This document shows, one piece after another, positions 247-39,224 of a stretch of 64,000 nt of DNA. Numbering within the stretch: position 1 is the first letter of the stretch; every line of letters starts with the position of its first letter. The notes under the pieces were generated by a model. It was not told the DNA's origin, searched no databases, and worked only from the letters and a program-made list of their open reading frames with translations. The stretch is from positions 248,001 to 312,000 of the IMG/VR virus record IMGVR_UViG_3300010403_000705. The stretch is one strand, 5' to 3'. The translations under genes and the position numbers were made by a program.

Positions 247-281
247 TGGTACATCACTTGCAGATTGCATATTCAATGCCA
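247..281. promoter_or_regulatory. 35-bp dyad sigma54-like element, copy 1
   Basis: TGGTAC-N5-TTGCA-gat-TGCA-N7-TGCCA; GG-N10-GC on both strands. Confidence 0.75.
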
Positions 282-334
282 AGTGATGTAGATGATTGTT
301 AGAGACCCATCAAGTAATCAATCTGAAATTAACT

Positions 335-637
335 ATGCTCCTCATCTCGATCCTCTCCTTGGTTCTGTCAATCACCTCGATCTTCGTGGGTGGTGGCAAA
401 GGAATTGCTATGTGGGTGATTGGCACGATTGCCTTAATCATCGCTGGCAACTTTCTGGGGAATGTGATTCAGATGTACAGCAATCATCAGGGACCCATCC
501 TCCTGGCAACTGCGGGGATTCAGGTAGTGGCGATTCTCATCTCGCGGTGGTGGGGTTTGGTTTTTTACTTCGTTGCTTCGGTGGGTCTTACCCTGGTTCT
601 TTTCCTCGGTGCCCTGGCTACCATGACGGTTGGTTGA
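335..637 (+). CDS. membrane protein, paralog of 8..202
   Basis: Several hydrophobic helices; shared motif with the upstream gene; ATG at 335. Confidence 0.75.
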   Translation: MLLISILSLVLSITSIFVGGGKGIAMWVIGTIALIIAGNFLGNVIQMYSNHQGPILLATAGIQVVAILISRWWGLVFYFVASVGLTLVLFLGALATMTVG

Positions 638-671
638 TAGACCCATCTACTTGTTGCTCGGAGAGATAGCA

Positions 672-815
672 ATGCTAACCATCTTTTGGCTGATTGGTCT
701 GCTTTACTGTTGCATTAAGTCCGGTTCGGAAGGAGTAGCTTTTTACCTGCTGGCAACCTTCCTGTTTTTTCTTCTGTTAGGTCGTGTCAATTACAGCTTG
801 CATAGTGGGTTCTAA
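672..815 (+). CDS. small membrane protein
   Basis: GGAGAG upstream of ATG; two hydrophobic segments. Confidence 0.55.
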   Translation: MLTIFWLIGLLYCCIKSGSEGVAFYLLATFLFFLLLGRVNYSLHSGF

Positions 816-836
816 CCAATCTGTTGTATGCTGGTA

Positions 837-869
837 GTCCTGGATCCTCCTAAAATAAGGATCCAGGAC
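837..869 (+). terminator. hairpin terminator-like
   Basis: GTCCTGGATCCT...AGGATCCAGGAC 12-bp stem. Confidence 0.6.
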
Positions 870-890
870 TTACCTGTCATCTATTCTTGT

Positions 891-925
891 TGGCATATCA
901 ATTGCAATATACAGTATCTATACCA
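891..925. promoter_or_regulatory. 35-bp dyad sigma54-like element, copy 2
   Basis: TGGCAT-atcaa-TTGCA-ata-TACA-N7-TACCA. Confidence 0.75.
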
Positions 926-1169
926 AGGTGCAAAAAAGACTACTGCAAACCCATCCATTATTGATCTTGCTCTAAGTTATGAAGAACCTCTTTTGGTACG
1001 GTGTGGTCTTCGTGGGCGGTTTGTTCGTTGGGACGCAGTACATCTCTCCCATCCTGCCGCAGTTGAATCATACTGTGACGGCGATTTCGGATGGCGCCAG
1101 TAGCGTCAAGTCGTCTCTTCCCAAGGTCAAGTAAGTCCTGCGCCGACTCTTACATTACGATAAGCGACA

Positions 1170-1358
1170 ATGAAGACCATCTTTCTGACTTTGACTCTGG
1201 TTGTTGGTGGAATGTATGTGGGCGTCAAGTATGTGGCACCTATTGTGCCGCAAGCTCACATTCCGACGGCGGTAGAGTTCAAGGATGCTTTGCATAAGCT
1301 GCATCAGGAAGTCTCTTGTCCGGTCGGACCCAATCAGAGTAAGTGTCGCAAGATGTAA
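1170..1358 (+). CDS. small membrane-anchored or secreted protein
   Basis: MKT plus hydrophobic N-terminus. Confidence 0.65.
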   Translation: MKTIFLTLTLVVGGMYVGVKYVAPIVPQAHIPTAVEFKDALHKLHQEVSCPVGPNQSKCRKM

Positions 1359-1388
1359 CCCATCACGATCGAAAGGATACTCAATATC

Positions 1389-1589
1389 ATGAATTATTCT
1401 CCGCAGAAGCGTGCTGCCCGTACTCGTGAGCTGAACCGGCTGATTGACGCGCAGCTCAAAGATGACGACGCTCGACCCGCCCGCGTCAAGCGTCTTCGGG
1501 CTCCCATCGACGACACCGATCTGCTGCCTGATCTCTACCGCTCTCCACGCGGTCGGCGTAAGCAGAAGCCGCACCATACCCACGACTGA
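1389..1589 (+). CDS. small basic hypothetical protein
   Basis: AAGGA RBS; followed by hairpin. Confidence 0.65.
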   Translation: MNYSPQKRAARTRELNRLIDAQLKDDDARPARVKRLRAPIDDTDLLPDLYRSPRGRRKQKPHHTHD

Positions 1590-1596
1590 ACCAACT

Positions 1597-1626
1597 ATGC
1601 CTGGCACCTTTTAGGTTGCCAGGCAT
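1597..1626 (+). terminator. hairpin terminator-like
   Basis: ATGCCTGGCA...TGCCAGGCAT. Confidence 0.6.
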
Positions 1627-1646
1627 TATTATTTAAACTAGTTGTT

Positions 1647-1785
1647 TGGCATATGAGTTGCAATTAGCACAAGCTGTACCAAGGGCAAATTTAATAAGCC
1701 TGCACTTATGGCACGGAAGTTGTAATTAGCATAAGCTGTTCCAAGTCTTATGGCACGCTAGTTGCTAACTACAAGTCTTGTACCA
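1647..1785. promoter_or_regulatory. three tandem 35-bp dyad sigma54-like elements (1647-1681, 1709-1743, 1751-1785)
   Basis: TGGCAT-atgag-TTGCA, TGGCAC-ggaag-TTGTA, TGGCAC-gctag-TTGCT, each with an inverted partner half. Confidence 0.8.
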
Positions 1786-1978
1786 AGCTCTGTGATGTCT
1801 TAGAAGACACCCATCAATTACTATGATGTTGCTTAGACACCGGTTGACGCTAAGCAAAGCGCGAAACCGAAGCGGTGGCGAATAGCTGCTGCGCCCCTTA
1901 CGGTGGTTTCTCTCTCCCATCCCGTAAAGGGGTGATCCAATAAGAGAGACAGATTCCAGCAACCAAAAGGAGCGCATC

Positions 1979-3358
1979 ATGAATTCTCGCACCGACCACA
2001 ACTCTCTTCTCGCCGCTCTCGATTCCAGTGCTCTCAACTTCGTGACCGCCGCCTACGGTGCACCGGCGGCTCCCATCAAGCCGACCTTCTCGATCGTCAG
2101 CAACGTCAGCGCTTCGGATCTCCGAACGCCCAAGGCTCCCAAGACGGGCACCAAAGAAGTGATCCACACTGTCAAGCCGTGCAAGCTGCCCTCGCAAGGC
2201 ACCCTCGACGCGGCGAGCTTCCTGGTTGCCACACGGCAGGCTGGCAAGAGACCGGCGACGTACATCCAAGATACCACCGATCTGGAGACGGGCGAGTTTC
2301 ATGCCGCTGGTTCTCCGCGACTGTCGGATAACGGCAGTCCCATTCTGGTTCACGATCCCAAGGTGCAGGTCGCTGATGAAGCCGCCAACATCGCTGCTTT
2401 CTGCGGTTACGATCTCTCGCTGCCCCACGGCACTCAGCTTGATAACGCGGTCAGGATCGCTCGAAGCACGCTGCAATCGCGGCACGATCATCGCGGCAAC
2501 GGGCAATCCTCCAAGCCAGCGGCTGGCGATTGGTCTCGCGATTCTACTCACTTCACCTATGGCGCAAAGCGCCATGCGGTCACGGTAACGCATCACATCG
2601 CGGCACAGCAGATCACCCCGGGTGCCGCCCATCGTTCGCCAGAGGCGCATCAGAATAGGTGGAGCATCGCTGGTTACGTGGCTGGGCGTCCCAATGCCCT
2701 TGCCAAGCTGGTCTCTGACCTGGAGGGGCGTGAGCGTCTGGCGGTGAGCGACAAGATCACGTTCGTCAACCTGCGCGAGCACGTGATGAAGAATGAGCTT
2801 GACGCCTATACCAAGCGTCTCGCCGCCGAGTTTCCTTCGACCGTCGCCTTGCGCGAGACGCTCAATGAGAATGGCGACGTGGTGGGATACGAGAAGGTCG
2901 AGATCAAGAATCCCATCGCCGCGTCTCTGCATGGGCTTCCGTGGAGGAGCGAGAAGCTGATCAACGCTCTTGCCAGTCTTCAAGCTCTGGCGGAAGCCCG
3001 TCTGGAAGCGATTCGCGCCGACAAGACAGGCGTGGATGTGGATGTGGAAACGGCTTACCAAACGGTTGCCCGTATCGCCGAGGAAGAGGCGACCGCTCCC
3101 ATCCGTCAGGGAGAAGAGATCGAGATCGAGAGCATCAATGTCAAGGGCATGCCTGCCAAGATGAGCCGTTATCAGGTGCGCTTGGCGGAAGCTAGCCGGC
3201 TTGCCAATCTCTCGAATCTCGCCGCCGAAGGTGACGCCATCTCTCAGCAAGAGTGCTTCGAGATCGTCTGCTCCCGTACGCGTCAGTCCCTGTCACAGCG
3301 TGGCGCGCCCACGATTGAGGAAGAGCTGACTCTCCTCAACTCTCTTCCCAAGGGATGA
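1979..3358 (+). CDS. hypothetical protein (459 aa), probably highly expressed early protein
   Basis: AAGGAG RBS, strong C/G-ending codon bias, downstream of triple promoter-like element, followed by hairpin. Confidence 0.85.
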   Translation: MNSRTDHNSLLAALDSSALNFVTAAYGAPAAPIKPTFSIVSNVSASDLRTPKAPKTGTKEVIHTVKPCKLPSQGTLDAASFLVATRQAGKRPATYIQDTTDLETGEFHAAGSPRLSDNGSPILVHDPKVQVADEAANIAAFCGYDLSLPHGTQLDNAVRIARSTLQSRHDHRGNGQSSKPAAGDWSRDSTHFTYGAKRHAVTVTHHIAAQQITPGAAHRSPEAHQNRWSIAGYVAGRPNALAKLVSDLEGRERLAVSDKITFVNLREHVMKNELDAYTKRLAAEFPSTVALRETLNENGDVVGYEKVEIKNPIAASLHGLPWRSEKLINALASLQALAEARLEAIRADKTGVDVDVETAYQTVARIAEEEATAPIRQGEEIEIESINVKGMPAKMSRYQVRLAEASRLANLSNLAAEGDAISQQECFEIVCSRTRQSLSQRGAPTIEEELTLLNSLPKG

Positions 3359-3549
3359 GAAACTCTGAGATTTGGGAGAGGGGCTCGGTCCCTCTCCCAT
3401 CTCTTCTTAAGATTCGATGTTATCGAAGATAATTGAAACAGCACAGGTTCCTGCCAAAGACGCGCATGCGTATATCAGAGCCTATGACTGTTGCAATTCT
3501 CTTCAATAGAATTGAGTTTAGGAGAACCATGAAACAGTTTAAGAGAAAC

Positions 3550-3912: not shown

Positions 3913-4062
3913 CCCATCCATGCGTCAATGGCTACGTGATCGTTATCGTCGGAGAGACCTGACCATCAAGCTGCGACGTAAGGAGTCAGGTCTTCGTCGG
4001 TTTCGAATCAAAGATGATCGGTATGCAATACCGCGAGAGCGGTGGCAACAGGAGCCCATCTG

Positions 4063-4284
4063 ATGTCAAGTGGTTTTAATTGCTACCTCAGTCAGGTCAA
4101 GTTGACCGTGGATGGCTACGAGCATGGACCGTGTGGCAAACATTGGGGCGTGGGTAAGCCACTGTACAAGATGGATATCAAGATGGCAGACTTCTGGAAG
4201 ACCGCCCATCTGCGCGCGGATGATCGTGAGGATGCCAAAAAGAAAGTGCTAAAGCAGTATCCTAAAGCGCTGTTCTTCATCTGA
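4063..4284 (+). CDS. hypothetical phage protein
   Basis: GGAG RBS; GY..G..WGVGKPLY motif. Confidence 0.65.
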   Translation: MSSGFNCYLSQVKLTVDGYEHGPCGKHWGVGKPLYKMDIKMADFWKTAHLRADDREDAKKKVLKQYPKALFFI

Positions 4285-4319
4285 TACCCATCTCTGTGTC
4301 TAAGTGAGGTCAAAGCATC

Positions 4320-4517
4320 ATGGCAAAGCCGGTGTGGCAGCAGAGGTTGCAGGACAAGCTGAATAGTAACCCGCTGTGTTTCGTCGGAGACACGCATCTG
4401 GTCAAGCACGTCTCTTGTCTCAAACAGGGTGAGAGCAAAGGAAAAAAGGTTACTCTGAGATTGGCGGTTAACTTCAGCTTCAATACCTGTGCGGAATGTA
4501 AGGTCTCGGTCAGGTAA
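4320..4517 (+). CDS. hypothetical protein
   Basis: GAGG RBS, ORF. Confidence 0.5.
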   Translation: MAKPVWQQRLQDKLNSNPLCFVGDTHLVKHVSCLKQGESKGKKVTLRLAVNFSFNTCAECKVSVR

Positions 4518-4530
4518 CGACGTGTGTCTG

Positions 4531-5004
4531 TAGGTGCGGAAGCGAGAACGCTTGGAAGGAACACCCGAAGGATTCGGTGGTAATTGCGTCCAGTTGGTAA
4601 GATACAGATCGGTTAAGTTCCGAGTCTGACACTGGGTCTATCACTCTGCTTCAGCAATAGAGTTGTACCTAATAAGCTAATCCAATTATCAAACCCATCT
4701 GGGTTGGTTGGAACGCGAGCTTGGGTTGAGCTGAAAAAAGAGATAGCAATCTGTTAACGCGATTGATGATGGTCCAATCGACAGGTCATACCGCTGTAAG
4801 ATCGGAAGTTTTGCGGCGGACATTGGAGAGTTTGAGTCTCTCCCATCAATCTCCCACTGACAGAATGAAACGCGGTTTTAATATTCTCCGGTAACCCCGG
4901 ATAGGTGTGGGGTCTGTGACAGCACCGAGGGAGCCCCATAGTTCTGTACAGTGACGTGTGAACGCACACGTCACCCTCATCCAAGCGTTTTCCCTTCCGC
5001 ATCT
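4531..5004 (+). ncRNA. candidate ~470-nt structured RNA with internal tRNA-like domain
   Basis: TAGGTGCGGAAG..AACGCTTGGA pairs with TCCAAGCGTT..CTTCCGCATCTA; internal cloverleaf-like fold 4761-4851; no + ORF. Confidence 0.55.
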
Positions 5005-5042
5005 AGAAACAACTCTAGCAACTCTTATCCGAGGCTGGCATC

Positions 5043-5378
5043 ATGTCAAAAGTTTCTGGTTTCGTTAACGTTGTCAGGGGTTACGTAGGCATCCTGTCTA
5101 AATTCGTCAGAAACTCATTGTTTCATGAATGCTCCAGCGTCGAGATGCTGAAAGAACGCCTGTCTCGCGGCAATTGGTGCCTTGCCCAGGCTTTCTACTG
5201 GCAGGATCTTTGTTTCATCAACCAAGTCGACGGTGGCGATGAATGGCTCGTCATCAAGGGCGATCTCGTGTTCGAGAGTTTGACTGTCGAGCCGATGATC
5301 GCTAGCGGTCGCTTCGACGACTTCCTTCGAAGGGTGATGACGGCGAGTCGTGAACAACTTCTAACGCTTCAATACTAG
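5043..5378 (+). CDS. hypothetical phage protein
   Basis: GAGG RBS; GNWCLAQAFY...INQVDGGDEWLVIK. Confidence 0.75.
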   Translation: MSKVSGFVNVVRGYVGILSKFVRNSLFHECSSVEMLKERLSRGNWCLAQAFYWQDLCFINQVDGGDEWLVIKGDLVFESLTVEPMIASGRFDDFLRRVMTASREQLLTLQY

Positions 5379-5439
5379 ATCTAAAGAGAACCCATCGACC
5401 AACCATTAATAGAGACCTTAGTAAAGGTAAAGAATAGCT

Positions 5440-5715: not shown

Positions 5716-5740
5716 AAAGACAGAAGCTAGTCCAGCGTGC

Positions 5741-5780
5741 AAAGAAGAGAGACGGTGCGTACGCACCGTCTCTCTTCTTT
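5741..5780. terminator. perfect 40-bp palindrome, bidirectional terminator-like
   Basis: AAAGAAGAGAGACGGTGCGT|ACGCACCGTCTCTCTTCTTT followed by T-rich tract. Confidence 0.7.
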
Positions 5781-5793
5781 GTTTTTAATTGGT

Positions 5794-5828
5794 TGGTATG
5801 AAGATTGCAAATTGCAAAGTCTAAGCCA
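5794..5828. promoter_or_regulatory. 35-bp dyad sigma54-like element
   Basis: TGGTAT-gaaga-TTGCA-aat-TGCA-N7-AGCCA. Confidence 0.75.
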
Positions 5829-5887
5829 ATCTATCGGAGACCCATCAACCAAACCTACCTTTGCGTGAAGGAAAGGAATTGATTTTC

Positions 5888-6142: not shown

Positions 6143-6203
6143 ACGTTAAGTCTTGTTTATCCTTCATCCCATCTCTCACAAGAGAAGATAGAGAGTAGCA
6201 TCT

Positions 6204-6677: not shown

Positions 6678-6680
6678 TAA

Positions 6681-6709
6681 AAAAGGAACGGCACCCCGCC
6701 GTTCCTTTT
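6681..6709 (+). terminator. intrinsic terminator
   Basis: AAAAGGAACGGC...GCCGTTCCTTTT. Confidence 0.7.
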
Positions 6710-6717
6710 GAAAGTTC

Positions 6718-6752
6718 TGGCACTGACATTGCAGATTGCATTTAATATACCA
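6718..6752. promoter_or_regulatory. 35-bp dyad sigma54-like element
   Basis: TGGCAC-tgaca-TTGCA-gat-TGCA-N7-TACCA. Confidence 0.8.
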
Positions 6753-6804
6753 ACAGCGATTAACACTGATAAGCACCCATCAGTTAATAAGATCTTCTAC
6801 AACT

Positions 6805-6957
6805 ATGGCTCGCATGAATATCAACGGTCTGACCTTCAATGACTGGCTGTCTGCCGCAGGATGCTCTTCGGATAAAGGCAAAGGAATCATCACTCTGATG
6901 TTGATCTCTGCCTGGCAAGGTGGGGAAGATCCGTGTGAGTGGAAGCAAGATAGCTAA
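6805..6957 (+). CDS. small hypothetical protein
   Basis: First ORF after promoter-like element. Confidence 0.5.
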   Translation: MARMNINGLTFNDWLSAAGCSSDKGKGIITLMLISAWQGGEDPCEWKQDS

Positions 6958-6994: not shown

Positions 6995-7447
6995 ATGAAA
7001 GTCTATATTCTCGCGGGCGCCAGTGGCAGCGGTAAGAGTCATCTAGCTTCGAAGATATGGGCTAGCCATCCAAAGGTGCTGGTATGTAGCGCCGACGACT
7101 ACCTCTATGATAGCCATGGCACTTATGTGTGGGGCGCGGATAAGCTCGCCGCTGCACACAACGAATGTCTGAAGAAGTTCATTGCTGCTGTTCAAGAAGA
7201 AGTGCCTGTGGTGGTGGTGGATAATACCAATACCACCATAGCAGAGATCGCGCCTTACTACAGCATTGCAGCCGCCTACGGCGCTGAGGTTGAGCTTGTC
7301 ATCCTCTTCTGCAATCCAGAAAAAGCCGTCAACCGTAACAAGCATAATACGCCGGCACCGGTAGTAACTGCCCAGATAAAGCGCCTCGGATGTCAAGAGC
7401 TTCCTTCGTTCTGGAAGTGTTCTATTCAAGTGATGTGCACAGATTGA
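6995..7447 (+). CDS. P-loop nucleotide/polynucleotide kinase (AAA_33-like)
   Basis: GASGSGKS Walker A, CSADDY, VVVDNTN, RNKH lid. Confidence 0.85.
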   Translation: MKVYILAGASGSGKSHLASKIWASHPKVLVCSADDYLYDSHGTYVWGADKLAAAHNECLKKFIAAVQEEVPVVVVDNTNTTIAEIAPYYSIAAAYGAEVELVILFCNPEKAVNRNKHNTPAPVVTAQIKRLGCQELPSFWKCSIQVMCTD

Positions 7448-7454
7448 ACCACTG

Positions 7455-7484
7455 AGGCGAGGGGAGCATCCCCTCGCCTTTTTT
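7455..7484 (+). terminator. intrinsic terminator
   Basis: AGGCGAGGGGA-gca-TCCCCTCGCCT plus T tract. Confidence 0.75.
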
Positions 7485-7490
7485 GCTGAA

Positions 7491-7525
7491 TGGCGCAGTG
7501 ATTGCTAGTTGCAAAGTAGATGCCA
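7491..7525. promoter_or_regulatory. 35-bp dyad sigma54-like element
   Basis: TGGCGC-agtga-TTGCT-agt-TGCA-N7-TGCCA. Confidence 0.75.
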
Positions 7526-9063: not shown

Positions 9064-9132
9064 GGCGTGGTAGAAAACCATAACCCATCCGCAAACTTCA
9101 GACATTATGTAGTTGGTGTGAGGTCAATCAAG

Positions 9133-11301
9133 ATGAAGAATCAGCCGCTGCCGATCGATGCCTTCTTGCCTGTTATTCTCGAAAGCGTTTCTTCTAATCC
9201 AGTCACGATCATTGTTGCCGAAACTGGCGCTGGGAAAAGCACGCGGGTTCCGCGTGCCTTGCTGGAAGCTGGCAAAAAAGTAGTGGTCACCCAACCGCGT
9301 CGTCTGGCTGCCGAATTGGTGGCTGAAAGAGTGGCGGCAGAGCACGGGTCTCCCATCGGTTCTTCTGTGGGATACAGGTTGGGCGGCGGGGTGCGAGTTG
9401 ATAACTCCAAGACTCGATGTTTGTTCATCACAGAGGGTCTGGCTCTGGTGCGTGAGCTGATGTCTTCTCAGGACTCCCATCACTCCTATGATGTGCTGGT
9501 GCTCGACGAAGTGCACGAATGGCACGAAGACATGGAGATTCTGGTTGCCTGGTGCCGGCGCGCTCTGGCAAGCAATGCGAAGTTTCGGTTGGTGCTGATG
9601 AGTGCCACCCTGGAAGCGCACAAGCTTTCTGAATACTTCGACGGAGCACCCATCATCAATGTTCCTGGTCGTATTTTTCCCGTGACGGTACAGGAACCCG
9701 AGGCGATGATTGAGGGCGATCAGAACCTGTGGAATCCCATCGTGCGCGACGTGACGCGATTGGTACAGCAAGGACGCAATGTCTTGGTCTTCGTTCCCGG
9801 CAAGCCCGAGATCTCTCAAGTCTGTGAAATGCTCAAGTTTACTGGGGCGAACGTTTTCCCTCTGCACGGCGAATTGGATAAAACAGAACGGCAGAAGTGT
9901 TTTGCCAGCTACTCCCATCCCAAGGTGATCGTCTCGACCAACGTATCACAGACTAGCATCACCATCGATGATATTGATGCAGTGGTGGATTCCGGTCTGG
10001 AGCGACGGGTGGAAGTGGTCAATGGTGTAGAGGGTCTGCGGCTGCGGTTGATCTCCAAAGCAGATTCTGCCCAGCGCCGCGGGCGCGCCGGTCGTTGTCG
10101 GGCAGGTATCTATATCGATCACAGCGATAACGCTTTTCGCACCATGCCCGGCGTGGGTTTTCGAGAAGAGTTTCCCATCCCCGAGATCTCTCGCGTCTTG
10201 CTTGACCGTGCGGTTCTTCGTCTGGCAATGGCGGATCTGGATCTGGAAGCTCTGGATCTGTTTCATGGTGTTTCTACATCTGAGGTGCATCTTGCCAAGG
10301 AAGTGCTTCGTGCGCTGGGTTGCCTGGGTGAGGGAATCCAGGTCACAGAGATTGGGCGACGCGTCTATCAGCTTCCCATCGGCGTTCGCTCTGCGCGGAT
10401 GCTGATAGAGGCTGAGAAGCGAGGATGCCTGAGTGAGGTGATGACCATTGCCGCCATCATCGAAAGCGGCGGAATCGTTGACAATAAAAACATCAACGAA
10501 GCAACTGGCATTCCCATCTGGCGCAATTTGGGCAGTGATAGCACCAGCGATCATCTGACCATGCTGAGAATCTTTCAGCATGCCACGGCAGGAAAGACCC
10601 CGTGGCGACAGCTTGGTTTGCACGGCAAAGGAATGTCGCAAGCCATAGAGACGCGCAAGGCATTGGAGTCCGCCAGCAAGAGAATCCTTGCCAGCGATTC
10701 CCATCGCAAAGGTACAACGGAAGATATCATTAAGAGCGTTTTGAGCGGCTTGGTTGATCAATTCCGAGCACGAACCACCAATCGTTGGGGAGAGTACACC
10801 TACGGCACTGACTGCCGGAAGCTCGGACAGACCTCCAGCGTTGTTGCCAGCGCCCATCAGTTTGTGGTAGGCATGCCTTTTGATATCTCTACCAAGAAGG
10901 GTGGGATCTTGGGTCTGCTGCAATTCGCTTCTGGAGTGAAGGTAGAGTGGGTGTTGGAGCTTGCTCCACATCTCTTCAAGGTACAGCGCGAAGCGCCGAA
11001 GTACGATCCGAATCTGGATCAGGTTGCTCGCACTACTACTGTTAAGTTCAGGGATCGCGTGGTGGCTAGCTTTGCCGATCCTTGCAATGAAGGAGATACT
11101 CTGGCGCAATATCTCTCGGAAGTTGTCAGTTTCAGCGATGCCTATGGCTATGGTTTTTATAGTTTGCCCGAGGCGTACCGCCGTGCTCTTCGAACTTTGC
11201 AGGGTCGTCCACGTCAGGTAGTACACACCCATCTCCGAAGTGTTTTGAGTGGGGTAGGTCGCCTGGCGAATGTAACGCCTTCTAGTTTGATGATGCAATG
11301 A
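9133..11301 (+). CDS. DEAH-box (HrpA/HrpB-like) RNA helicase
   Basis: LPI start, AETGAGKST, TQPRRLAA, DEVH, MSAT, PLHG, STNVSQTSITIDD, QRRGRAGR, HA2-like region. Confidence 0.92.
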   Translation: MKNQPLPIDAFLPVILESVSSNPVTIIVAETGAGKSTRVPRALLEAGKKVVVTQPRRLAAELVAERVAAEHGSPIGSSVGYRLGGGVRVDNSKTRCLFITEGLALVRELMSSQDSHHSYDVLVLDEVHEWHEDMEILVAWCRRALASNAKFRLVLMSATLEAHKLSEYFDGAPIINVPGRIFPVTVQEPEAMIEGDQNLWNPIVRDVTRLVQQGRNVLVFVPGKPEISQVCEMLKFTGANVFPLHGELDKTERQKCFASYSHPKVIVSTNVSQTSITIDDIDAVVDSGLERRVEVVNGVEGLRLRLISKADSAQRRGRAGRCRAGIYIDHSDNAFRTMPGVGFREEFPIPEISRVLLDRAVLRLAMADLDLEALDLFHGVSTSEVHLAKEVLRALGCLGEGIQVTEIGRRVYQLPIGVRSARMLIEAEKRGCLSEVMTIAAIIESGGIVDNKNINEATGIPIWRNLGSDSTSDHLTMLRIFQHATAGKTPWRQLGLHGKGMSQAIETRKALESASKRILASDSHRKGTTEDIIKSVLSGLVDQFRARTTNRWGEYTYGTDCRKLGQTSSVVASAHQFVVGMPFDISTKKGGILGLLQFASGVKVEWVLELAPHLFKVQREAPKYDPNLDQVARTTTVKFRDRVVASFADPCNEGDTLAQYLSEVVSFSDAYGYGFYSLPEAYRRALRTLQGRPRQVVHTHLRSVLSGVGRLANVTPSSLMMQ

Positions 11302-12824: not shown

Positions 12825-12912
12825 GGGCGAATGGCGAAACTGGTAGACGCAGTGGTTTCAAAAACCGCCGAGGTAAAATCTCGTGGGGGTTCGATTCCCC
12901 CTTTGCCCACCA
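12825..12912 (+). tRNA. tRNA-Leu(CAA)
   Basis: GGGCGAA/TTTGCCC acceptor, GTGGT-TTCAAAA-ACCGC anticodon arm, long V-arm, TTCGATT T-loop, encoded CCA. Confidence 0.9.
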
Positions 12913-13550: not shown

Positions 13551-13841
13551 ATGTCATGGATCAGGTCATTTCGTTCCCATCGAGAAGCTTGTGACATGAG
13601 GGATGTGCTCACGAAGCATGGTTTTGGAAAACGAGAAGATTTCGATGTTGTGACATCCAAGACTGCTTCAAGACTTTTTGATCTCAGTTATAATCACACC
13701 GCTTTTATGGTGCGCCCATGCAACAAGGAAACACAAGATCTCAATAGCAAGTACCTTTTGCTAGCAGTGCAAGCCAGTAACTTCTTGCATGGCTGGATTG
13801 CCTGCACCAACACCAAGAAGCCGCGCCCGAAGGTATCGTAA
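13551..13841 (+). CDS. hypothetical protein
   Basis: AAGGA RBS; terminator hairpin at 13846-13878 follows. Confidence 0.7.
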   Translation: MSWIRSFRSHREACDMRDVLTKHGFGKREDFDVVTSKTASRLFDLSYNHTAFMVRPCNKETQDLNSKYLLLAVQASNFLHGWIACTNTKKPRPKVS

Positions 13842-13892
13842 CTGCAAGGTTGGAGGAGGGGTTCCCTCCTCCAACCTTTGCTATATGGCTTA

Positions 13893-13927
13893 TGGTACAA
13901 CTTTTGCATTATGCACAATGAATGCCA
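13893..13927. promoter_or_regulatory. 35-bp dyad sigma54-like element
   Basis: TGGTAC-aactt-TTGCA-tta-TGCA-N7-TGCCA after hairpin 13846-13878. Confidence 0.8.
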
Positions 13928-19249: not shown

Positions 19250-19329
19250 GACCTTCTGGCGTTAACTGTTAAGACTTGAAAGTGGCGGGTAGCACAACGC
19301 TCCCGCCACTTTTTTGTTTTATTATGAAT

Positions 19330-19364
19330 TGGTATAGTATTTGCAATATACATTAACCATGCCA
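19330..19364. promoter_or_regulatory. 35-bp dyad sigma54-like element
   Basis: TGGTAT-agtat-TTGCA-ata-TACA-N7-TGCCA after terminator 19279-19312. Confidence 0.75.
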
Positions 19365-23469: not shown

Positions 23470-23534
23470 GGAATTTCTGTTACGTCTTTGAGGAGCGTGG
23501 GATTACCCCACGCTCCTCAAAGTTATTGTTTAAT

Positions 23535-23569
23535 TGGCACTAGCATTGCAATATGCGAAGAGTATGCCA
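23535..23569. promoter_or_regulatory. 35-bp dyad sigma54-like element
   Basis: TGGCAC-tagca-TTGCA-ata-TGCG-N7-TGCCA after a 16-bp hairpin. Confidence 0.8.
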
Positions 23570-26337: not shown

Positions 26338-26876
26338 TAGGGACTGATGCAAGATGTCCGGGGCTTCTTTCAGAAGCCCCGGACATCTTTGCTTTCCCAT
26401 CAGACAATCAGAAAGACTATTCACATGAAGTATTTTGTTCTTATATTAACTGGAGGTTTGTTCTTTCTTGCATGTTCCTTAGTGTGGCATTACTGTTCTG
26501 AATGGTGGCACGCCTTGCTTGCGTGCGTGTTTCTGTTTTTCTTTTCATTCTTCTCTATACTAAGTGGTATGGTTATACAGGATGATTGACCCATCACTTA
26601 TTCTTTTGGCTATCTTTAAGAGAGGAGTAGATTATGACAAATGAATGGGGAATGGTTCCAGTCTTCAATCGACACAATATGCAAATTGGCGAGTCTCTGT
26701 ACGAAGGAGATATCATCATGGTTCCGCGCGATAACAGTTATCGCGTTTTCAAATATGAGATTACTGGATCTTATGTAGAGACTTCGCATCAAATCATCGG
26801 TCTTGATTTGAAGGACGATTAAGATAGATTCTCACGAATGGGCGCGTATGCGCCCATGATATTTATATTTATTGAT

Positions 26877-26911
26877 TGGCATCATCATTGCATTTTGCAT
26901 ATGCTATACCA
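26877..26911. promoter_or_regulatory. 35-bp dyad sigma54-like element
   Basis: TGGCAT-catca-TTGCA-ttt-TGCA-N7-TACCA after hairpin 26838-26857. Confidence 0.8.
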
Positions 26912-30319: not shown

Positions 30320-30538
30320 ATGAATTTCGATCAAATGTCAATTCGTATTGCTGCTAAGATTGAGAATCCTGCGCATTGGATGTTGGAGCTTCGTCGTATC
30401 GCTACTGAGCTTCGTCTTGATGTGCGTCGGTGTCTTCCTTTGGCGCCTGAATCTTTGCAAATCGCTTGCCGGGCGCTGCTTGATGAGGCAGGCAAACAGA
30501 GACGTACGCCTGCGGAAATCCTTCGCGCTGTTGATTAA
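30320..30538 (+). CDS. hypothetical protein
   Basis: ORF ending at terminator 30546-30574. Confidence 0.65.
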   Translation: MNFDQMSIRIAAKIENPAHWMLELRRIATELRLDVRRCLPLAPESLQIACRALLDEAGKQRRTPAEILRAVD

Positions 30539-30594
30539 AGGAATCATGGGGCGGCTTCTCAGAAGCCGCCCCATTTTTATTTCTTGTTTAAGAA

Positions 30595-30629
30595 CGGCAC
30601 AGATTTTGCATAGTGCATAATACATGCCG
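30595..30629. promoter_or_regulatory. 35-bp dyad sigma54-like element
   Basis: CGGCAC-agatt-TTGCA-tag-TGCA-N7-TGCCG. Confidence 0.75.
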
Positions 30630-30999
30630 CATTTTTCCCATCCAGAATCAAACATAACTAAAAGTATGGATAACACTACAGTTCATATTATCAATTGGTC
30701 TATCATGCGCTTTGTGGGACCAGGATATGATCCCATTGTATTGCATGGTGATTTTTGCGGACATCCGAGTCTTGATCGTGGCACGCCTAGTTCTTTTTTA
30801 TCATTCGATAAGAAAAATTTGCTTGGCAAAAGTATAAGCGGAAAAGTCTATATTTTGGAAGCTTGTTCTTTTCGTCCGACTGGGTTTGCGCGCACGCTGG
30901 AAGATGCGTGTGATTGGATCGAGCAGAATTGGGTGAGAAAAAAATAAAATAATTTACCGCCCATCTATCAGATTTATTTTTCTAATATGAAGGATACTT

Positions 31000-31446
31000 A
31001 TGATTACTCTGGCAAGATTTGATGTTTCTGAAATCCTCCCTCTAATAGGAGCAGGACAGGAGCCCATCATGCTCAAAGGTCATAGGGTTAAAGTTGGATC
31101 CACTAGATTAGAGTGTCTCAAAAGAAATCAGAAATGTGTTTCTTGTCATCGGGTTGGTACTGTCTTTCTTTTGCAGAGTCACCGTGGAGAAACACCACAT
31201 CTAAATCTTTTCCATGTGATGGCAGATAAAGAGCCAGAAAACTGGAACTTAGTTGCATGGAAATCAATGTGGAAAAATTTGATGACTCAAGATCATATCA
31301 TTCCTAAATGGTCTGGAGGATCTGATAGTATTGATAATTTACAGACTATGTGTTCGTCGTGTAACCATAAAAAAGGTGGTAGCACTCCAGAAGATCCTAG
31401 TCGGGATCCAAATTGCGCGACGCGAAAAAAGAAAAAAAGAAAGTAA
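31000..31446 (+). CDS. HNH endonuclease
   Basis: CVSC ... TQDHIIPKWSGGSDSIDNLQTMCSSCNHKKG. Confidence 0.88.
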   Translation: MITLARFDVSEILPLIGAGQEPIMLKGHRVKVGSTRLECLKRNQKCVSCHRVGTVFLLQSHRGETPHLNLFHVMADKEPENWNLVAWKSMWKNLMTQDHIIPKWSGGSDSIDNLQTMCSSCNHKKGGSTPEDPSRDPNCATRKKKKRK

Positions 31447-33714: not shown

Positions 33715-33726
33715 TAGAATGTAGAT

Positions 33727-34821
33727 ATGCTCAAGGAAAAATATCTAATTTTATACTATTTTAACATGATTATTGGTTCAGATAACGATTTGTTTGATTC
33801 AAATGATTCATTGAGTAAATCTCTTGTACTTTCATGGATTAAATATTTGGAAGACAAGAGTTATGATATATTATCTAAGCATTACCCCAAAGATGAAGCG
33901 CAGGTTGAGGTAACTAACGGTTCGCAAAACTTTATAGGAAAAATTGTTCGTTATCCCAAATCTTTAGGAGAATCAACAGGATGTCTATTTGTAATCGATA
34001 GAGAGTATGGCGGCGGTTCTTGGGTGCCGTACCTATGTATTACTGAAATAAATGGATAATTAATATGATTATTTCTAAACTCTTAAAAGATAAGATGCAT
34101 AATAGAGGTGTACCTGGTTGGTTTATTCATGAAATATTTGATCGTAATTATCATATTAACGATGGAGAATTGTTGTCTTGGACATTGATTCCATTGCTAG
34201 ATCAAATGCCCATCTTATCATCTCATAAAGATAGATATGGAGTTAAGGCGGCTGAGCAAGCAAGAGTATTAACAGATGCGGCGATGCAAATATCTTTGCA
34301 GTGTTTTCAAATCACACCTGGTTTTAAAAAGCTTAGTGATGAATTTAAGAATTATCTTAATGAATCTTCAACTTGGCATCTTCAATCTTTTTTTAGTGGA
34401 ATTAGATTGAAGTATAATCACACTAAGTTGAAAAGTGTCATTGAAGCTAGCTTTTGGTCTAGTCACGATTATGGTGTTAAGATAAATGATTGGGGATTTA
34501 ACCCAATGAATCAAGCTGCACATGCAGCGCATGTTTTTACACAATCCGCTACTATTCTTGATAGTGAATTTGTTTGGTCAGAAGCTGCGAAACTCTTACA
34601 GAAGATTAGTAAAAACAATGAAGATTCCTGAACATAGGCGTTGTATTCATGATCGTAATAAAAACCAAATTGGATATGTTTGGTATAGTGGTCCAGTAAT
34701 TTCTATTGAAGGAAAATTGTACCATTGTTCAGATTATGATGATGGTTATTTTGAAGTAGTTCCCATCATTGTAGAAGGTGGGATCCATTATTGTCTTGGC
34801 GATTCTCGAATGAGTGATTAA
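33727..34821 (+). other. three hypothetical CDS (33727-34059, 34065-34631, 34618-34821)
   Basis: Packed ORFs. Confidence 0.6.
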
Positions 34822-34831
34822 AAAAAATATA

Positions 34832-35695
34832 ATGAGTAAATCAAAAGGTAAGCAACAGGTAAATATTACTATTCTTTACGGTCTGCCTGGTAGTGGAAAA
34901 TCCTTTTATAGTCAACGAAACAAAGAGACTAGAGTTGACTTTGATGCTATCATTAAGTCACATGGACCAAATAAATTTGCTGTTTTAAAAGAGCTTAATA
35001 GGCAAACAGAAATAAAATTATCAAGAAATTATTACTACACTAGAAACCATGCCGTAACTATTGATGGTTTGGTTACTACCAATCAACAGCTTCGAGATTT
35101 GATCGATTCCTTTACCAGTTACTTCCAACAATATCAGATCATTTTTAGGTTAGTATATTGGAATGAAGACCGAGAAGCTTGTCTTCATAACGATAAAAAC
35201 CGTCGTACAATTTCTGCGGCAGCGGCAATTAAATCTATGCCGTATGAAAAACCGCATTTTGATTCTTTTCCTGAACTATCCCAGAAAAGAATTCAACCTA
35301 TGAAGGTAGTGAAAAAGCATAATGCTATTTCATGGATCTCCCATCTGTTAAGAGAGTTGGATTATGATCCTATTCAGATCGAAACTATTACTGACACTAT
35401 GCAATTGGAATCTAAAAGCTGGTGTTTGGGCGGAGAATGTTGCACTTGGGATGATCAATCTTCTGTAGTAGAAGCACAGGCTCCGCGGCAGTTCGAGGAG
35501 CTTGATAGGCTGCTTGTATATATTAATCCTGAGATTACAGCTATAGATTTTAGACAGATAAAGGATATCTGTTGTAGTCTATTTCATTTTTCCGAATCAG
35601 ATTATTATGGCGGCAGCACCGATAATGCCAGACATGTATGTGATCTAAAACAGTTATATGAATGTTTACTAAATCTTCAATTCATAAATGAATGA
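34832..35695 (+). CDS. P-loop kinase (PNK-like) with extra C-terminal domain; paralog of 39995
   Basis: ILYGLPGSGKS, IDGL.TTN.QLR, EDREACL.ND..RR. Confidence 0.82.
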   Translation: MSKSKGKQQVNITILYGLPGSGKSFYSQRNKETRVDFDAIIKSHGPNKFAVLKELNRQTEIKLSRNYYYTRNHAVTIDGLVTTNQQLRDLIDSFTSYFQQYQIIFRLVYWNEDREACLHNDKNRRTISAAAAIKSMPYEKPHFDSFPELSQKRIQPMKVVKKHNAISWISHLLRELDYDPIQIETITDTMQLESKSWCLGGECCTWDDQSSVVEAQAPRQFEELDRLLVYINPEITAIDFRQIKDICCSLFHFSESDYYGGSTDNARHVCDLKQLYECLLNLQFINE

Positions 35696-36612
35696 GATAC
35701 TATAATCATATGCTTTTTAATCCTAGTGATTATCTGGTACAGAAAATTTCTTTGCTAGAAGACTATTTCATTCAATTCGGAATTGATGCAGTAGTTTTTG
35801 GAATGTCTGGTGGTGTAGATTCAGCAGTAGTTGCTGGAATTCTCAAGCGTTGTCAATCACTCAAACGAGTGATTGCAGTGGCTGCACCCATCTCTTCTAA
35901 GGGAGCTACTAATCAAGATGTGGCGGCAAATCGAGCGGTCAAACAATGTGAGGCTTTTGACCTTGAAGTATGGAAGCTTGATCTTACCCCCGCTCAGTTT
36001 TGTTATGAAGGCATCATGAGATGTTCCCCATCTAATGCAGAGGGTGAGAGAAGAGTATGGGCAGACGGACAGATCCTTTCAATTGCTCGAACTCCTTTGT
36101 TTTATGGTGTGGCTGCGCATCTGCAAGCTGAAGGATATCGGGCTGTGGTTTCTGGCACCACGAATCGTTCCGAGGGATCATATATTGGATTCTACGGTAA
36201 AGGTTCAGACGGTATGAATGACATCCAACCTATCTCAGATATGTGGAAGTCTCAGGTCTTTGCACTAGCCAATCATCTGGGAGTGATTCCTGAAATTATC
36301 AATGAGAAACCGCGTGGAGATGTTTGGGATTCTCGTTGTGATGAAGAGATGATTGGCGCCACTTATCCTCAGATAGAAGCTTATCTAGAAGCTAAATGTC
36401 TTAGTTTTTCAATGAACCCATTTTCGCCCGCAGCCACGTCTTACCAAAAAATGGTTGGTGCTGAAGCGATAGAAAAACTTCATAGCATCAATCGTCATAA
36501 ATATCTAGTCGGGTCCCCTGCTATTCATTTTGATATTCTTGATCGCCATATACCGGGTGGATGGTCTGAAATGAATAGTTATACCCATGTCCTTGGAAGA
36601 CGTTATGTCTAA
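35692..36612 (+). CDS. nadE: NH3-dependent NAD+ synthetase
   Basis: GMSGGVDSAVV, GTTNRSE, GFYGKGSDG..DIQPI.D..KSQV..LA..LG, DEEMIG.TY. Confidence 0.9.
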   Translation: MRYYNHMLFNPSDYLVQKISLLEDYFIQFGIDAVVFGMSGGVDSAVVAGILKRCQSLKRVIAVAAPISSKGATNQDVAANRAVKQCEAFDLEVWKLDLTPAQFCYEGIMRCSPSNAEGERRVWADGQILSIARTPLFYGVAAHLQAEGYRAVVSGTTNRSEGSYIGFYGKGSDGMNDIQPISDMWKSQVFALANHLGVIPEIINEKPRGDVWDSRCDEEMIGATYPQIEAYLEAKCLSFSMNPFSPAATSYQKMVGAEAIEKLHSINRHKYLVGSPAIHFDILDRHIPGGWSEMNSYTHVLGRRYV

Positions 36613-36625
36613 AGGTAGAAGGTAA

Positions 36626-36916
36626 ATGAAGCTAAATATAGCTGACTTACGTTATTATTCGATTGCTAATAGAACGCAAATCCAAGCACAGGAAAGATGT
36701 GCTTGTTACTATTGTATTAAAATCTATCAATCAAATCTGATTGTAGAGTGGCATTTGGAAAAACGTGGTCAATATAAAGGGGAAGAAACAGCTATTTGTC
36801 CTTTCTGTGGAATTGATTCAGTGATTCAATTCGAGCATTCTTTCCATGAAGAAATTGATATTTCTTTTCTGAAGTCCGCCAGAGATTATTGGTTTCATAA
36901 CAATAGCTCTAAATGA
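36626..36916 (+). CDS. small Cys-rich (zinc-binding) conserved hypothetical protein
   Basis: CACYYC ... TAICPFCGIDSVI. Confidence 0.75.
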   Translation: MKLNIADLRYYSIANRTQIQAQERCACYYCIKIYQSNLIVEWHLEKRGQYKGEETAICPFCGIDSVIQFEHSFHEEIDISFLKSARDYWFHNNSSK

Positions 36917-36955
36917 TTTTGGATTCAAAATACAATAACTAAAAGTAATAAAATT

Positions 36956-37771
36956 ATGCTTAATCTTGGATTCAAAGGTTCTGTGCCTGGCGCTTGGCGT
37001 GTCCCAGAAAACTTCAAACTAACAGCACATTGTTGCAGTGGATTGTCAAAGTCAATCCTTCCCAATCTTGCCTTATACATTCCAGACGCCTTATCAAAGA
37101 AGGATTGTGATCTTCTTATAAAACTATTTCGCAAACAAAAAACTGCTCCTGTAGCAGTATCAGGATACCAAACTGCTGATCCAAATGAAATTGGCAGTGT
37201 GCGTGCGACAGGTTGGGGACCAGAGCTGAGTGCACAATTGTGGGAGAAACTGTGTGCAGCATGCAGCGCATTTGGTGTTGCACTTGGCAGTGAGTATGGT
37301 CCTGTTTCAGTAAATCAATTTACACCCACTGACTGGTACGCTATCCCAGGCAAACGCAAAGAGCATACTAGATGGATAGAATCCGGAATTTCTCCAGTGC
37401 TTAGGTTTATGGAATACAGACATGGGGGACGTCATAATACCCATTATGATATGGGATTTGATTATGAAGCTCATAATCCAAACGATCATCGACGCACTCT
37501 TATGTCTGTGGTATGGTATTTGAATGAAGAACCTCATTCAGGAGGTTGTACTAGATTTATTGAAGACGGTCAATCCCATCTACCGATTTGGAATAGAAAG
37601 CTAGATGATTGGGAGCGTTCTGCTAGTGAAGATGAAGTATTAGCTACGCAACAGCCGCATCGTGGGGGTGCTTTGATTTTTTGGCACCGAATGGCTCATG
37701 ATGTGCAAGAATTTACTGGTAATTCTCGCATCATTATCCGTGGTGATATTGAATTCACTGCGCTGAACTAA
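36956..37771 (+). CDS. 2OG-Fe(II) oxygenase (prolyl-hydroxylase-like)
   Basis: RFMEY..GG.H..HYD, YLN....GG.T.F, H..AHDV, R...RGD. Confidence 0.85.
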   Translation: MLNLGFKGSVPGAWRVPENFKLTAHCCSGLSKSILPNLALYIPDALSKKDCDLLIKLFRKQKTAPVAVSGYQTADPNEIGSVRATGWGPELSAQLWEKLCAACSAFGVALGSEYGPVSVNQFTPTDWYAIPGKRKEHTRWIESGISPVLRFMEYRHGGRHNTHYDMGFDYEAHNPNDHRRTLMSVVWYLNEEPHSGGCTRFIEDGQSHLPIWNRKLDDWERSASEDEVLATQQPHRGGALIFWHRMAHDVQEFTGNSRIIIRGDIEFTALN

Positions 37772-37929
37772 GTTAACCCCTCACTTTTATTTAGTGAATA
37801 AAATATGGATCCCATCATAGAACACATTTTGTTATCTTATACAAGTACCGGATTGGCTTTCTTTATAATTAGAGAGATGTTTATCTATCTTGATGGTGGT
37901 CGATAACCTTTTATAAGGATCATAACTCT

Positions 37930-39097
37930 ATGAGTTACATTGCAATTATCAATCCCTCCAGTTGCATGGTAGTTACATTGGGACAAGGCACTCAAATCAT
38001 TGATGCCAATCCTTCATTCTTTTTGCTTGATCTTATCAGACGTGGTTATGATATTGCTGTTATTTCTTCTTCAAATAAATTTTCTGATGTTGAGAAGTGT
38101 TGGCTTGATTTGATTCCGAGCGAAAATATCTTCCTGCCCATTGGTGAGAATGAAGAGTGTTTTGGGGTTTATAATTCCTCTGTTATTGCCGCTTGGGCGG
38201 CGGCTTTTAAGAAGTTTGGATTGAAACCACCCATCGATCAAACTCGTTGGACCAACTATAAGAGAGCTGCTCAAGAACAAGGAGTAGTAACGGATCCATC
38301 GGATCTACTTCCACAGGATAATTCTTAATCTTTTAACGCATAAAATTACAGGATCATAGTGATCCGACAGCTTGGGCGGGTGAATATTTACAATGAAAAT
38401 ATCTTACGAGTCCACAGCGGCTGCTATTTTTCTCCTTGAAGTAAAAATGGTTGTTGCTCATTTAGCTAGCGATTATATTTCGGAGCTAGAAAATAGATGC
38501 AGCTATCTTTCAATATTAGAAGGATGTGGCTGGACAGAGCAACAATTTGATCAAGAAACACTACGTCGTGTGGATGCAGGATGGAAATTTCTTCGTCCAT
38601 CACCTCGTGGTAATCATCCAATGCATGCGTTGATGCCTGTCTCCCTTAACGGGATGGCGGGCATTCCGCCTTTAAGCATTTAAGGGGCATTAAATAGCAT
38701 ACATGATATGTTTAATGTACAGATCAAGAATCTCAATACTGAAACATGGATGTATGAAAATGTTGCCGTAATATCTTTTTTACTTTCTATATGGTGGCTG
38801 ACTGGTCATCAAGCAGTTGAACTTATTGGTAGTGCAGCAGTGTTTTTTGGTTTTTGTTGCTCGTCAATTAGTGACCGTATGGTTGAGAGAGAAGCAGCCA
38901 GAACCAAACCTTTAGTACATTGTTATAGAATGTATTGGTGGTTCTTTTGGGCAAAAGAATGCAGTTTTGCTATCTATTTTGCCCTGCATGGCGCATGGAG
39001 CGCTATTGCTGGATGTATAGTGTTTGGTTTATACCCACTATGGCGTAAATACTGGCGTTACATTCACCCTTTGCGGCTTTCTAAAAGTAAGTCTTAA
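37930..39097 (+). other. three hypothetical CDS (37930-38328, 38393-38683, membrane protein 38708-39097)
   Basis: ORFs; the last is hydrophobic. Confidence 0.6.
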
Positions 39098-39189
39098 TAG
39101 AAGACACGCGCCTAAAATTTAATAGGCGCGCACTTTGCAGAACCGCAATCTTACCAAAGGCTAGCGATTTTGCAAGTTTTCTTATGAAT

Positions 39190-39224
39190 TGGTATATATT
39201 TTGCATAGTGCAATTAGTATGCCA
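39190..39224. promoter_or_regulatory. 35-bp dyad sigma54-like element (last copy seen)
   Basis: TGGTAT-atatt-TTGCA-tag-TGCA-N7-TGCCA. Confidence 0.8.

Follow-up and report, generated by a model that had tools for sequence, protein, structure and literature searches.

The early gene blocks of a huge phage of 433 kb begin with a 35-bp mirror-symmetric element, each half of which resembles a sigma54 (RpoN) −24/−12 promoter. The same dyad recurs in very diverse phages but is almost never found in bacteria, and in this phage it is coupled to a one-strand hexamer, CCCATC, repeated about every 200 bases. The window, the whole stretch of 64,000 nucleotides that was analyzed, is part of this phage genome. 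The preliminary description had listed 14 copies of a pattern TGGYAY-N5-TTGCW-N3-WRCR-N7-WRCCA, and this observation was confirmed by our analysis. The pattern gives 11 loci with no mismatch, compared with a mean of 0.00 in shuffled sequences, and with up to three mismatches it gives exactly the 14 listed loci, each matching on both strands (28 matches against 0.52 expected). The length is always 35 bp. All 14 elements are intergenic, lie 40–80 nt after the previous stop codon and point the same way as the genes. As claimed, the spacers are not conserved. The arms and spacers do not covary, since Watson-Crick pairing at the variable positions equals the expectation under independence, and the element is therefore not a hairpin or cruciform. 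It does have the twofold symmetry, with a fixed center, of a dyad operator.

The individual elements, all on the + strand, differ in their match to the pattern and in their surroundings. The element at 247–281 has 0 forward and 1 reverse mismatches, and is preceded by a hairpin at 198–237 (dG −23.9) and followed by CCCATC at 306 and an ATG at 335, which is +29. That at 891–925 (0 and 2 mismatches) follows a hairpin at 830–877 (dG −27.7), with CCCATC at 950 and ATG at 979. Three elements form a tandem triple: 1647–1681 (0 and 1) behind a hairpin at 1597–1626 (dG −20.8), a degenerate middle copy at 1709–1743 (2 and 2) without a terminator of its own, and 1751–1785 (0 and 1), followed by CCCATC at 1810. 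The element at 5794–5828 (0 and 1) follows a 20-pair hairpin at 5739–5782 (dG −36.8) and precedes CCCATC at 5841, while that at 6718–6752 (0 and 1) follows a hairpin at 6681–6709 with an A-tract before it and a T-tract after it, and precedes CCCATC at 6776 and ATG at 6805. The elements at 7491–7525 (1 and 1; hairpin 7454–7480; CCCATC 7554), 13893–13927 (0 and 1; hairpin within 13837–13887, dG −32.6; CCCATC 13955), 19330–19364 (0 and 2; hairpin within 19270–19321, dG −30.5; CCCATC 19374) and 23535–23569 (0 and 1; hairpin 23486–23522, dG −31.5; CCCATC 23578) show the same arrangement. At 26877–26911 (0 and 1; CCCATC 26929) the hairpin at 26824–26866 is weaker (dG −16.7, 9th percentile). The element at 30595–30629 is a variant with CGG/CCG outer arms (2 and 3), with a hairpin at 30538–30585 (dG −28.8), CCCATC at 30637 and ATG at 30666. 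Finally, the element at 39190–39224, in the low-GC part, is fully symmetric (0 and 0) and has CCCATC at 39232 but no strong upstream hairpin (28th percentile).

Counting the triple as one, the claim that each element follows a terminator hairpin holds for 10 of the 12 independent sites, with an upstream folding energy at about the 2nd percentile or lower, or for 11 if the weaker hairpin before 26877 is included. The claim that CCCATC follows closely holds for all 12, at 7–29 nt, whereas by chance about 13% of sites would show this. However, the proposed terminator-element-CCCATC cassette is not a closed unit, because CCCATC is a genome-wide sense-strand motif.

The interpretation in the preliminary description, that the elements are face-to-face sigma54 promoters, is only partly supported. 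Sigma54 promoters have the consensus TGGCAC-N5-TTGCW, with GG and GC doublets exactly 10 bp apart, and this spacing is invariant in both halves of all 14 window elements and all 35 elements of the family. The information profile of each half matches the consensus, including the ranking of conserved positions: T1 G2 G3 Y4 A5 Y6, with the two C positions relaxed to Y, and then T13 G14 C15 A16, mirrored at positions 20–23 and 30–35. The two halves are nevertheless not equivalent. T12, the T at −15, is conserved in 33 of 35 elements but its mirror A24 in only 18 of 35, and the forward half matches the consensus better in 19 elements, worse in 6 and equally in 10. In the window and its closest relatives, the forward half faces the strand that carries the CCCATC leader motif. 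Moreover, huge phages place two dyads back to back at divergent junctions, as seen in four of the viral loci that we retrieved (numbered with the prefix L): L007 at 3068/3148, L012 at 5195/5280, L036 at 1637/1712 and L002 at 3393/3451. In these phages, each element therefore serves one direction rather than acting as a symmetric switch.

A scan beyond the window, which had been named beforehand as a check, gave about 100 exact matches to the dyad in 76 viral loci, against 8 in 596 Gb of bacterial genomes, which is about chance. One-way TGGCAC-N5-TTGC units accompany dyads in other phages, but in the huge-phage family every perfect unit lies inside a dyad. The use of sigma54 by phages does occur elsewhere: many viral contigs of about 45 kb (L144–L194) encode a short enhancer-binding AAA+ protein, followed about 50 nt later by a canonical one-way TGGCACG-N4-TTGCT. 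These promoters have no mirror half and come with an activator gene, and the contigs share no sequence with the dyad loci. No excess of sigma70-like sites was found, and there is no sigma or RNA-polymerase gene in the window.

The genes for a sigma54 protein and its activator, whose presence had been proposed as a further test, were not found in the phage sequence examined, which left most of the 433 kb unexamined. No RpoN homolog lies in these contigs, as none of the 29 viral hits belongs to the family, and a profile search of the window and family ORFs found nothing. Likewise, no enhancer-binding AAA+ protein was detected in the window or family loci, nor in family contigs among the best 80 of 112 viral hits. 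The host was not identified, so that the suggested sigma54-reliant host, such as Myxococcota or other deltaproteobacteria, has no evidence either way, and these searches do not decide whether a sigma54 protein and an activator are available to the phage. There is also no conserved upstream enhancer, the sequence logo being flat apart from the T-tract.

The last copy of the triple dyad would drive a conserved early gene at 1979–3358 (+), encoding 459 amino acids. This is the most widely shared ORF among the dyad-bearing huge-phage loci, occurring in 7 loci, and its homolog in L014 also follows a triple dyad. It has no Pfam, PHROG, PDB or Foldseek match and no recognizable fold. Clustering of the ORFs of the 76 loci gave no shared DNA-binding family, so that no cognate protein was found for a dyad operator.

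Based on these results, we propose with moderate confidence that the elements are directional promoters of the early or middle transcription units of a huge phage of about 433–448 kb, each unit having the layout of intrinsic terminator, 5–20 nt, dyad, 7–29 nt, first CCCATC and gene(s). In this view, the working part is the forward half, TGGYAY-N5-TTGCA, a sigma54-type promoter most likely read by the sigma54 RNA polymerase of the host, with the start expected near position 27 of the element; there are no transcription-start data. The mirror half keeps the same critical bases except the T at −15, and may be a second binding site, either for the same reader in the opposite orientation or for a symmetric phage regulator that overlays the promoter, controlling firing rather than driving a second useful transcript. 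Our analysis demonstrates the existence, significance, symmetry, directionality and placement of the elements, their wide and phage-restricted distribution and their coupling to the downstream motif, whereas sigma54 as the reader, the position of the start and the function of the mirror half are inferences, and neither the activator that sigma54 would need nor the reader of the mirror half has been identified. An early program that depends on an ATP-driven activator is awkward, and a monomeric reader alone does not explain why every perfect unit in this family lies inside a dyad.

Another possibility, which we consider doubtful, is that the dyad is the site of a phage-encoded symmetric factor, either a dimeric or tetrameric transcription factor or the specificity subunit of a phage polymerase, which alone directs transcription. 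The resemblance to sigma54 promoters would then be convergent, or reflect a factor derived from the sigma54 DNA-binding domain. The near-perfect symmetry conserved across phages from 27 to 65% GC, the confinement of units to dyads in the huge-phage family, the near absence from bacteria and the lack of a detected RpoN or activator gene agree with this idea, as do the four contact blocks, which all read TNGCA, as two direct and two inverted copies 11, 8 and 11 bp apart. However, the mirror half shows the same graded conservation as a sigma54 site, including the Y/R degeneracy, which would be a coincidence for an unrelated protein; single bipartite units with exact sigma54 spacing occur alone in other dyad-bearing phages; and no shared DNA-binding protein was found.

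It is less likely that the elements are mainly high-affinity traps for sigma54 holoenzyme, which forms stable closed complexes, acting as roadblocks or insulators after terminators or titrating host sigma54 away from its regulon. Two binding orientations per site would double capture, and the position after terminators, the many copies per genome and the lack of a detected activator and enhancer are compatible with this, but the elements are directional and tied to the leader motif and gene starts, the region has no other promoter candidates, and in small phages the single copy often sits at the head of operons, frequently at divergent junctions. A true bidirectional promoter, with a leftward transcript serving as antisense RNA or colliding with read-through from the upstream unit, appears the least likely. 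In phages outside the huge-phage family, 29 of 71 dyads lie between diverging ORFs, although these ORF calls are naive, and some elements, such as that at 39190, are perfectly symmetric. On the other hand, huge phages use one dyad per direction at divergent junctions, no leader motif lies on the opposite strand to the left of any window element (only 3 GATGGG occur on the + strand, none of them adjacent), and the upstream hairpins are mostly not bidirectional terminators. The sponge, activator-bypass and switch ideas of the preliminary description were not tested.

Sigma54 promoters are regarded as tightly gated bacterial switches, and among the papers searched we found no description of phages using them. 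Relative to these promoters, the phage element shares the bipartite core, the strict spacing and the placement upstream of co-oriented genes, but it is always paired with an overlapping inverted copy 7 bp away, lacks enhancer sites, and has no cognate activator or sigma factor in the sequence examined. A mirror-symmetric form that is common in uncultivated phages and absent from bacteria would be a new promoter architecture, a simple sequence marker for these phages, and an entry point to how 400-kb phages time their early genes without an obvious polymerase or sigma factor of their own. The promoter/stem-loop cassettes of T4-type early regions, to which the preliminary description compared the elements, are likewise repeated hairpin-plus-promoter modules between small early genes on one strand. 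However, the promoter class differs and the non-conserved spacers leave little homology for recombination; a role in module shuffling was not examined. In promoters overlaid by a dyad operator, such as the lambda and LexA-type designs, one half is constrained by the polymerase and the mirror half would be needed only by a symmetric regulator, which would explain the single asymmetric position. Here, no regulator has been identified, and the mirror half keeps a sigma54-like profile rather than one of its own.

CCCATC is the commonest hexamer of the early region and occurs 183 times on the + strand of the window and 3 times on the − strand. The dense array at 1–31100 (+) contains 150 copies against 3, with a mean spacing of 208 nt, a minimum of 51 nt and a CV of 0.61, in all three frames, at 4.0 per kb in coding and 7.7 per kb in intergenic sequence. 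It continues more sparsely to 64000 and beyond, with another 33:0 in 31–64 kb and 17:0 in locus L204, which overlaps the last ~12.8 kb of the window and runs 8.8 kb beyond it. In the relative L019, an ATG lies at +30 of nearly every copy and there is no Shine-Dalgarno sequence, but in the window only about 15–25 of the 183 copies fit such a distance, and the predicted RNA accessibility of the motif is no different from controls, which leaves a role in translation initiation undecided. The strand bias and over-representation are those of a polar DNA motif. In L007 the motif switches strand with the direction of transcription at a divergent junction, and the fixed +30 distance to ATG in L019, L007, L012 and L014 points to expression, but as the whole genome was not examined, it was not settled whether replication or DNA ends, rather than genes, set the orientation. 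Like Chi, KOPS/SRS, the RfaH ops element and the NusG-dependent TTNTTT pause motif, CCCATC is strand-specific, over-represented, co-oriented with genes and selected at the nucleotide level. It is, however, 20 to 60 times denser, at one per 130–210 nt, with a minimum spacing of about 50–60 nt, is obligatory just after each promoter, and in relatives is fixed at 30 nt before start codons that lack a Shine-Dalgarno sequence.

A more speculative and rather doubtful possibility would be that huge phages of several lineages share a two-part, phage-private expression code, composed of a directional sigma54-like promoter locked into a 35-bp dyad and a sense-strand CCCAT(C/T) word that must follow each promoter. 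The word would recur every 100–200 nt through early genes, even at the cost of protein sequence, and sit exactly 30 nt before start codons lacking a Shine-Dalgarno sequence. A dedicated phage factor would read it on the non-template DNA strand or on the RNA, marking phage transcription units as 'self' for elongation control or ribosome recruitment. The word does reshape the proteins: it is selected strongly enough to triple the frequency of Pro-Ile dipeptides, which points to an unknown factor that reads phage genes along their whole length.

Our pattern searches confirmed the repeated 35-bp element. The pattern matches 11 loci exactly, with no match in 100 shuffles, and when up to three mismatches are allowed it matches the fourteen copies counted in the preliminary description and no others, each on both strands (28 matches against 0.52 expected). 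All ORFs of any length lie on the + strand, and every element is intergenic. The upstream hairpins are also real. Ten of the 12 independent sites have an upstream folding energy at about the 2nd percentile of the region or lower, while site 26877 is weaker and 39190 has none. The elements at 1709 and 1751 are tandem copies behind 1647. A CCCATC follows each independent site within 7-29 nt. The finding is real, statistically overwhelming and larger than was first seen. The interpretation offered with it was only partly supported. The sigma54 reading is the best available but unproven, and the idea of a terminator-element-CCCATC cassette needs correcting.

The window is identical to pieces of IMGVR_UViG_3300010403_000705, a viral contig of 432,844 bp, and lies in the interior of a near-identical contig of 447,666 bp in ENA (ERZ27256657 k141_5300428). 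Its genes are those of a large lytic phage, comprising many small unknown ORFs, an HrpA-like helicase, a UvrD-like helicase, NAD synthase, RNA ligase, kinase-like AAA_33 proteins, dCMP deaminase, phiEco32-type COOH-NH2 ligases and five tRNAs. An Rfam search returned only tRNAs. No sequenced phage is close, and no DNA match was found among 50,697 phage records.

A scan of relatives had been proposed beforehand as a way to examine the element, and we searched the viral collection with an exact, stricter form of the pattern. This gave about 100 matches in 76 loci, many of them in contigs of 200-480 kb and others in contigs of 40-60 kb spanning 27-65% GC. In contrast, the same scan of 596 Gb of bacterial genomes gave 8 matches, about what chance predicts for 17 fixed and 3 twofold positions. 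The dyad is thus a widespread, phage-specific element. In relatives of the window phage the layout is the same, with a hairpin, a T-rich spacer, the dyad, a short gap and the leader motif. A cultured model was also sought. Lentibacter phage ICBM1 shares 60% terminase identity with L043, a small dyad-bearing phage of the viral collection, but it has no dyad.

A logo of 35 non-identical family elements reads T1 G2 G3 Y4 A5 Y6, T12 T13 G14 C15 A16, T20 G21 C22 A23, R30 T31 R32 C33 C34 A35, with an AT-rich centre and spacers that carry no information. Variable positions on the two sides do not covary, which rules out a hairpin or cruciform and indicates that proteins rather than base pairing read the element. 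Both halves show the graded conservation of sigma54 promoters, with the strict 10-bp GG-to-GC distance. The one clear asymmetry is T12, the -15 position, which is kept in 33 of 35 elements, while its mirror, A24, is kept in only 18 of 35. The forward half matches the consensus better in 19 elements and worse in 6. Direction is therefore encoded, and it agrees with the genes and with the strand of the leader motif. In huge phages, divergent junctions carry two dyads back to back, one for each direction, which argues against one dyad serving both directions in those phages. In small phages the usually single dyad often lies at the head of operons, in several cases beside the terminase and portal genes, and often between diverging ORFs (29 of 71, although on naive ORF calls). 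In another phage lineage (loci L027, L052 and L062), arrays of the palindrome CTGCCAAAATGGCAG follow each dyad, and may represent a different regulator's operator coupled to the same promoter type.

Whether sigma54 is the reader was considered next. In addition to the conservation profile, one-way units with the same spacing occur beside dyads in other phages, and a scan for sigma70-like promoters in the window showed no excess. Moreover, clear sigma54 systems exist in other viral contigs. Contigs of about 45 kb (L144-L194, for example L153:3001-3750 and L157:3001-3770) encode a short sigma54-activator AAA+ protein with no DNA-binding domain, followed about 50 nt downstream by a canonical one-way TGGCACG-N4-TTGCT promoter with no mirror half. 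We found no description of this apparent phage sigma54 system in the papers searched, nor anything on sigma54 in jumbo phages, on phage enhancer-binding proteins or on CCCATC. These activator loci do not overlap with the dyad loci.

The preliminary description had named a search for RpoN-like and activator genes as a check on its reading, and this search found neither in the window or its family loci, although most of the 433 kb was not examined. A search with a single RpoN protein gave uninformative patterns, and an alignment-based scan using the invariant RpoN box then found 29 viral RpoN homologues, none of them in these contigs. The phage records that contain rpoN look like bacterial contigs. 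A group of viral contigs (L092-L107 and L112, with the match at about 4001-5275 in each), several of about 50 kb and others of 10-28 kb, carry a full-length RpoN homologue about 28-30% identical to the E. coli protein, which is either phage-encoded sigma54 or bacterial DNA in the viral collection. None of the best 80 of 112 viral activator hits is in the family, and local HMM searches of the window and family ORFs found nothing. Pfam scans of 137 window ORFs showed no sigma factor, polymerase subunit or sigma54-interaction domain. One early ORF within 1-32400, whose position was not located, matches the OmpR/PhoB-type winged-helix domain (Trans_reg_C, E = 2.7e-07). If sigma54 is the reader it is therefore the host's, with an activator that has not been identified. 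The tRNA set (Leu-CAA, Arg-TCT, Ile-TAT) hints at a host richer in GC than the phage, although this is a weak inference.

In this family every perfect unit lies inside a dyad, so the symmetry is functional. One possibility is that the same reader binds in reverse, acting as a competitor, trap or roadblock, which fits the sigma54-like profile of the mirror half. Another possibility would be that a symmetric phage regulator overlays the promoter, which fits the loss of the -15 T. Our analyses did not separate the two, and a clustering of all ORFs in the 76 loci found no shared DNA-binding family. Nor did they decide between the switch, sponge and activator-bypass functions suggested earlier. Taken together, the existence of the dyad, its phage-specific distribution and its encoded direction rest on the sequences themselves, while the involvement of sigma54 is an inference that we consider about as likely as not.

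The most widely shared gene among these loci is window 1979-3358, which encodes a conserved early protein of 459 aa directly behind tandem dyads. It sits behind the only triple dyad, as does its homologue in L014 (2895-4238, - strand), one of the dyad-bearing relatives. Further homologues lie in the dyad-bearing loci L012 (1461-2153), L038 (5248-6141), L007 (2224-3003, - strand) and L025 (8329-9012, - strand). The protein carries the motifs LDAxxFxxAxRxAGKR, GYVAGMP and ARERLAA, but it has no recognisable family or fold, with no Pfam, PHROG, PDB or Foldseek match. The structure model was poor (pLDDT 56), and Foldseek returned only coiled-coil noise. Neither this early protein nor the HrpA-like helicase has real phage relatives.

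The larger surprise is CCCATC. The preliminary description treated it as part of a cassette, but a closed cassette was rejected because the hexamer is genome-wide. It occurs 183 times on the + strand and 3 times on the - strand of the window, and it is also found in the relatives L019, L042, L014, L069, L008, L007, L012 and L038. It is densest in 1-31100 and is the commonest hexamer of the first 31 kb, with 149 copies on + against 3 copies of its reverse complement on the same strand. The hexamer is sharply defined, with only 'not C' preferred before it. The spacing is quasi-regular, with a mean of 208 nt and no gap under 51 nt where about 32 would be expected, while in L042 the mean is 128 nt with a CV of 0.41. 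No helical phasing of the motif was observed.

The hexamer lies in all three frames and in intergenic DNA, being twice as dense in the latter. Twelve copies, in all three frames, lie inside the gene for the early HrpA/DEAH-type (RNA) helicase of 744 aa (9067-11301). Pro-Ile occurs 60 times against about 20 expected, and 47 of these 60 pairs use CCC-ATC against 15% expected. The motif is therefore not a by-product of a peptide or of codon usage, but is selected at the nucleotide level at a cost to proteins. Lineage-specific extensions are present in relatives, namely CCCATC-N3-TAACGG in L019, CCCATCGCCAAACGG in L007 and CTCCCATTCAC in L012 and L038. Relatives also show a fixed +30 distance to start codons. 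In L019, ATG lies exactly 30 nt after almost every copy, with no Shine-Dalgarno sequence, and the window shows the same +29/+30 peak for a minority of copies. In L007 the motif switches strand with the direction of the dyads. An exposed RNA site received no support, as the predicted unpaired probability is 0.40 against 0.42-0.44 in controls. We conclude that a factor, not identified here, reads this word in the direction of transcription, either on the non-template strand or on the RNA.

Near 31000, the GC content drops abruptly from about 48% to about 37%, and the CCCATC density falls fivefold at the same place, which may be a boundary between two expression or replication regimes. The RNA ligase and three kinase-like AAA_33 proteins (58227-59450, 6995-7447, 34814-35695 and 39902-40810), together with the five tRNAs at 12825, 21790, 39888, 42541 and 54196, suggest an RNA or tRNA repair set. 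Finally, three tandem paralogues of the phiEco32-type COOH-NH2 ligase are followed by a GGACT-family protein, at window 61174-62739 and at 11716-14569 of L204, a locus that overlaps the end of the window and runs beyond it.
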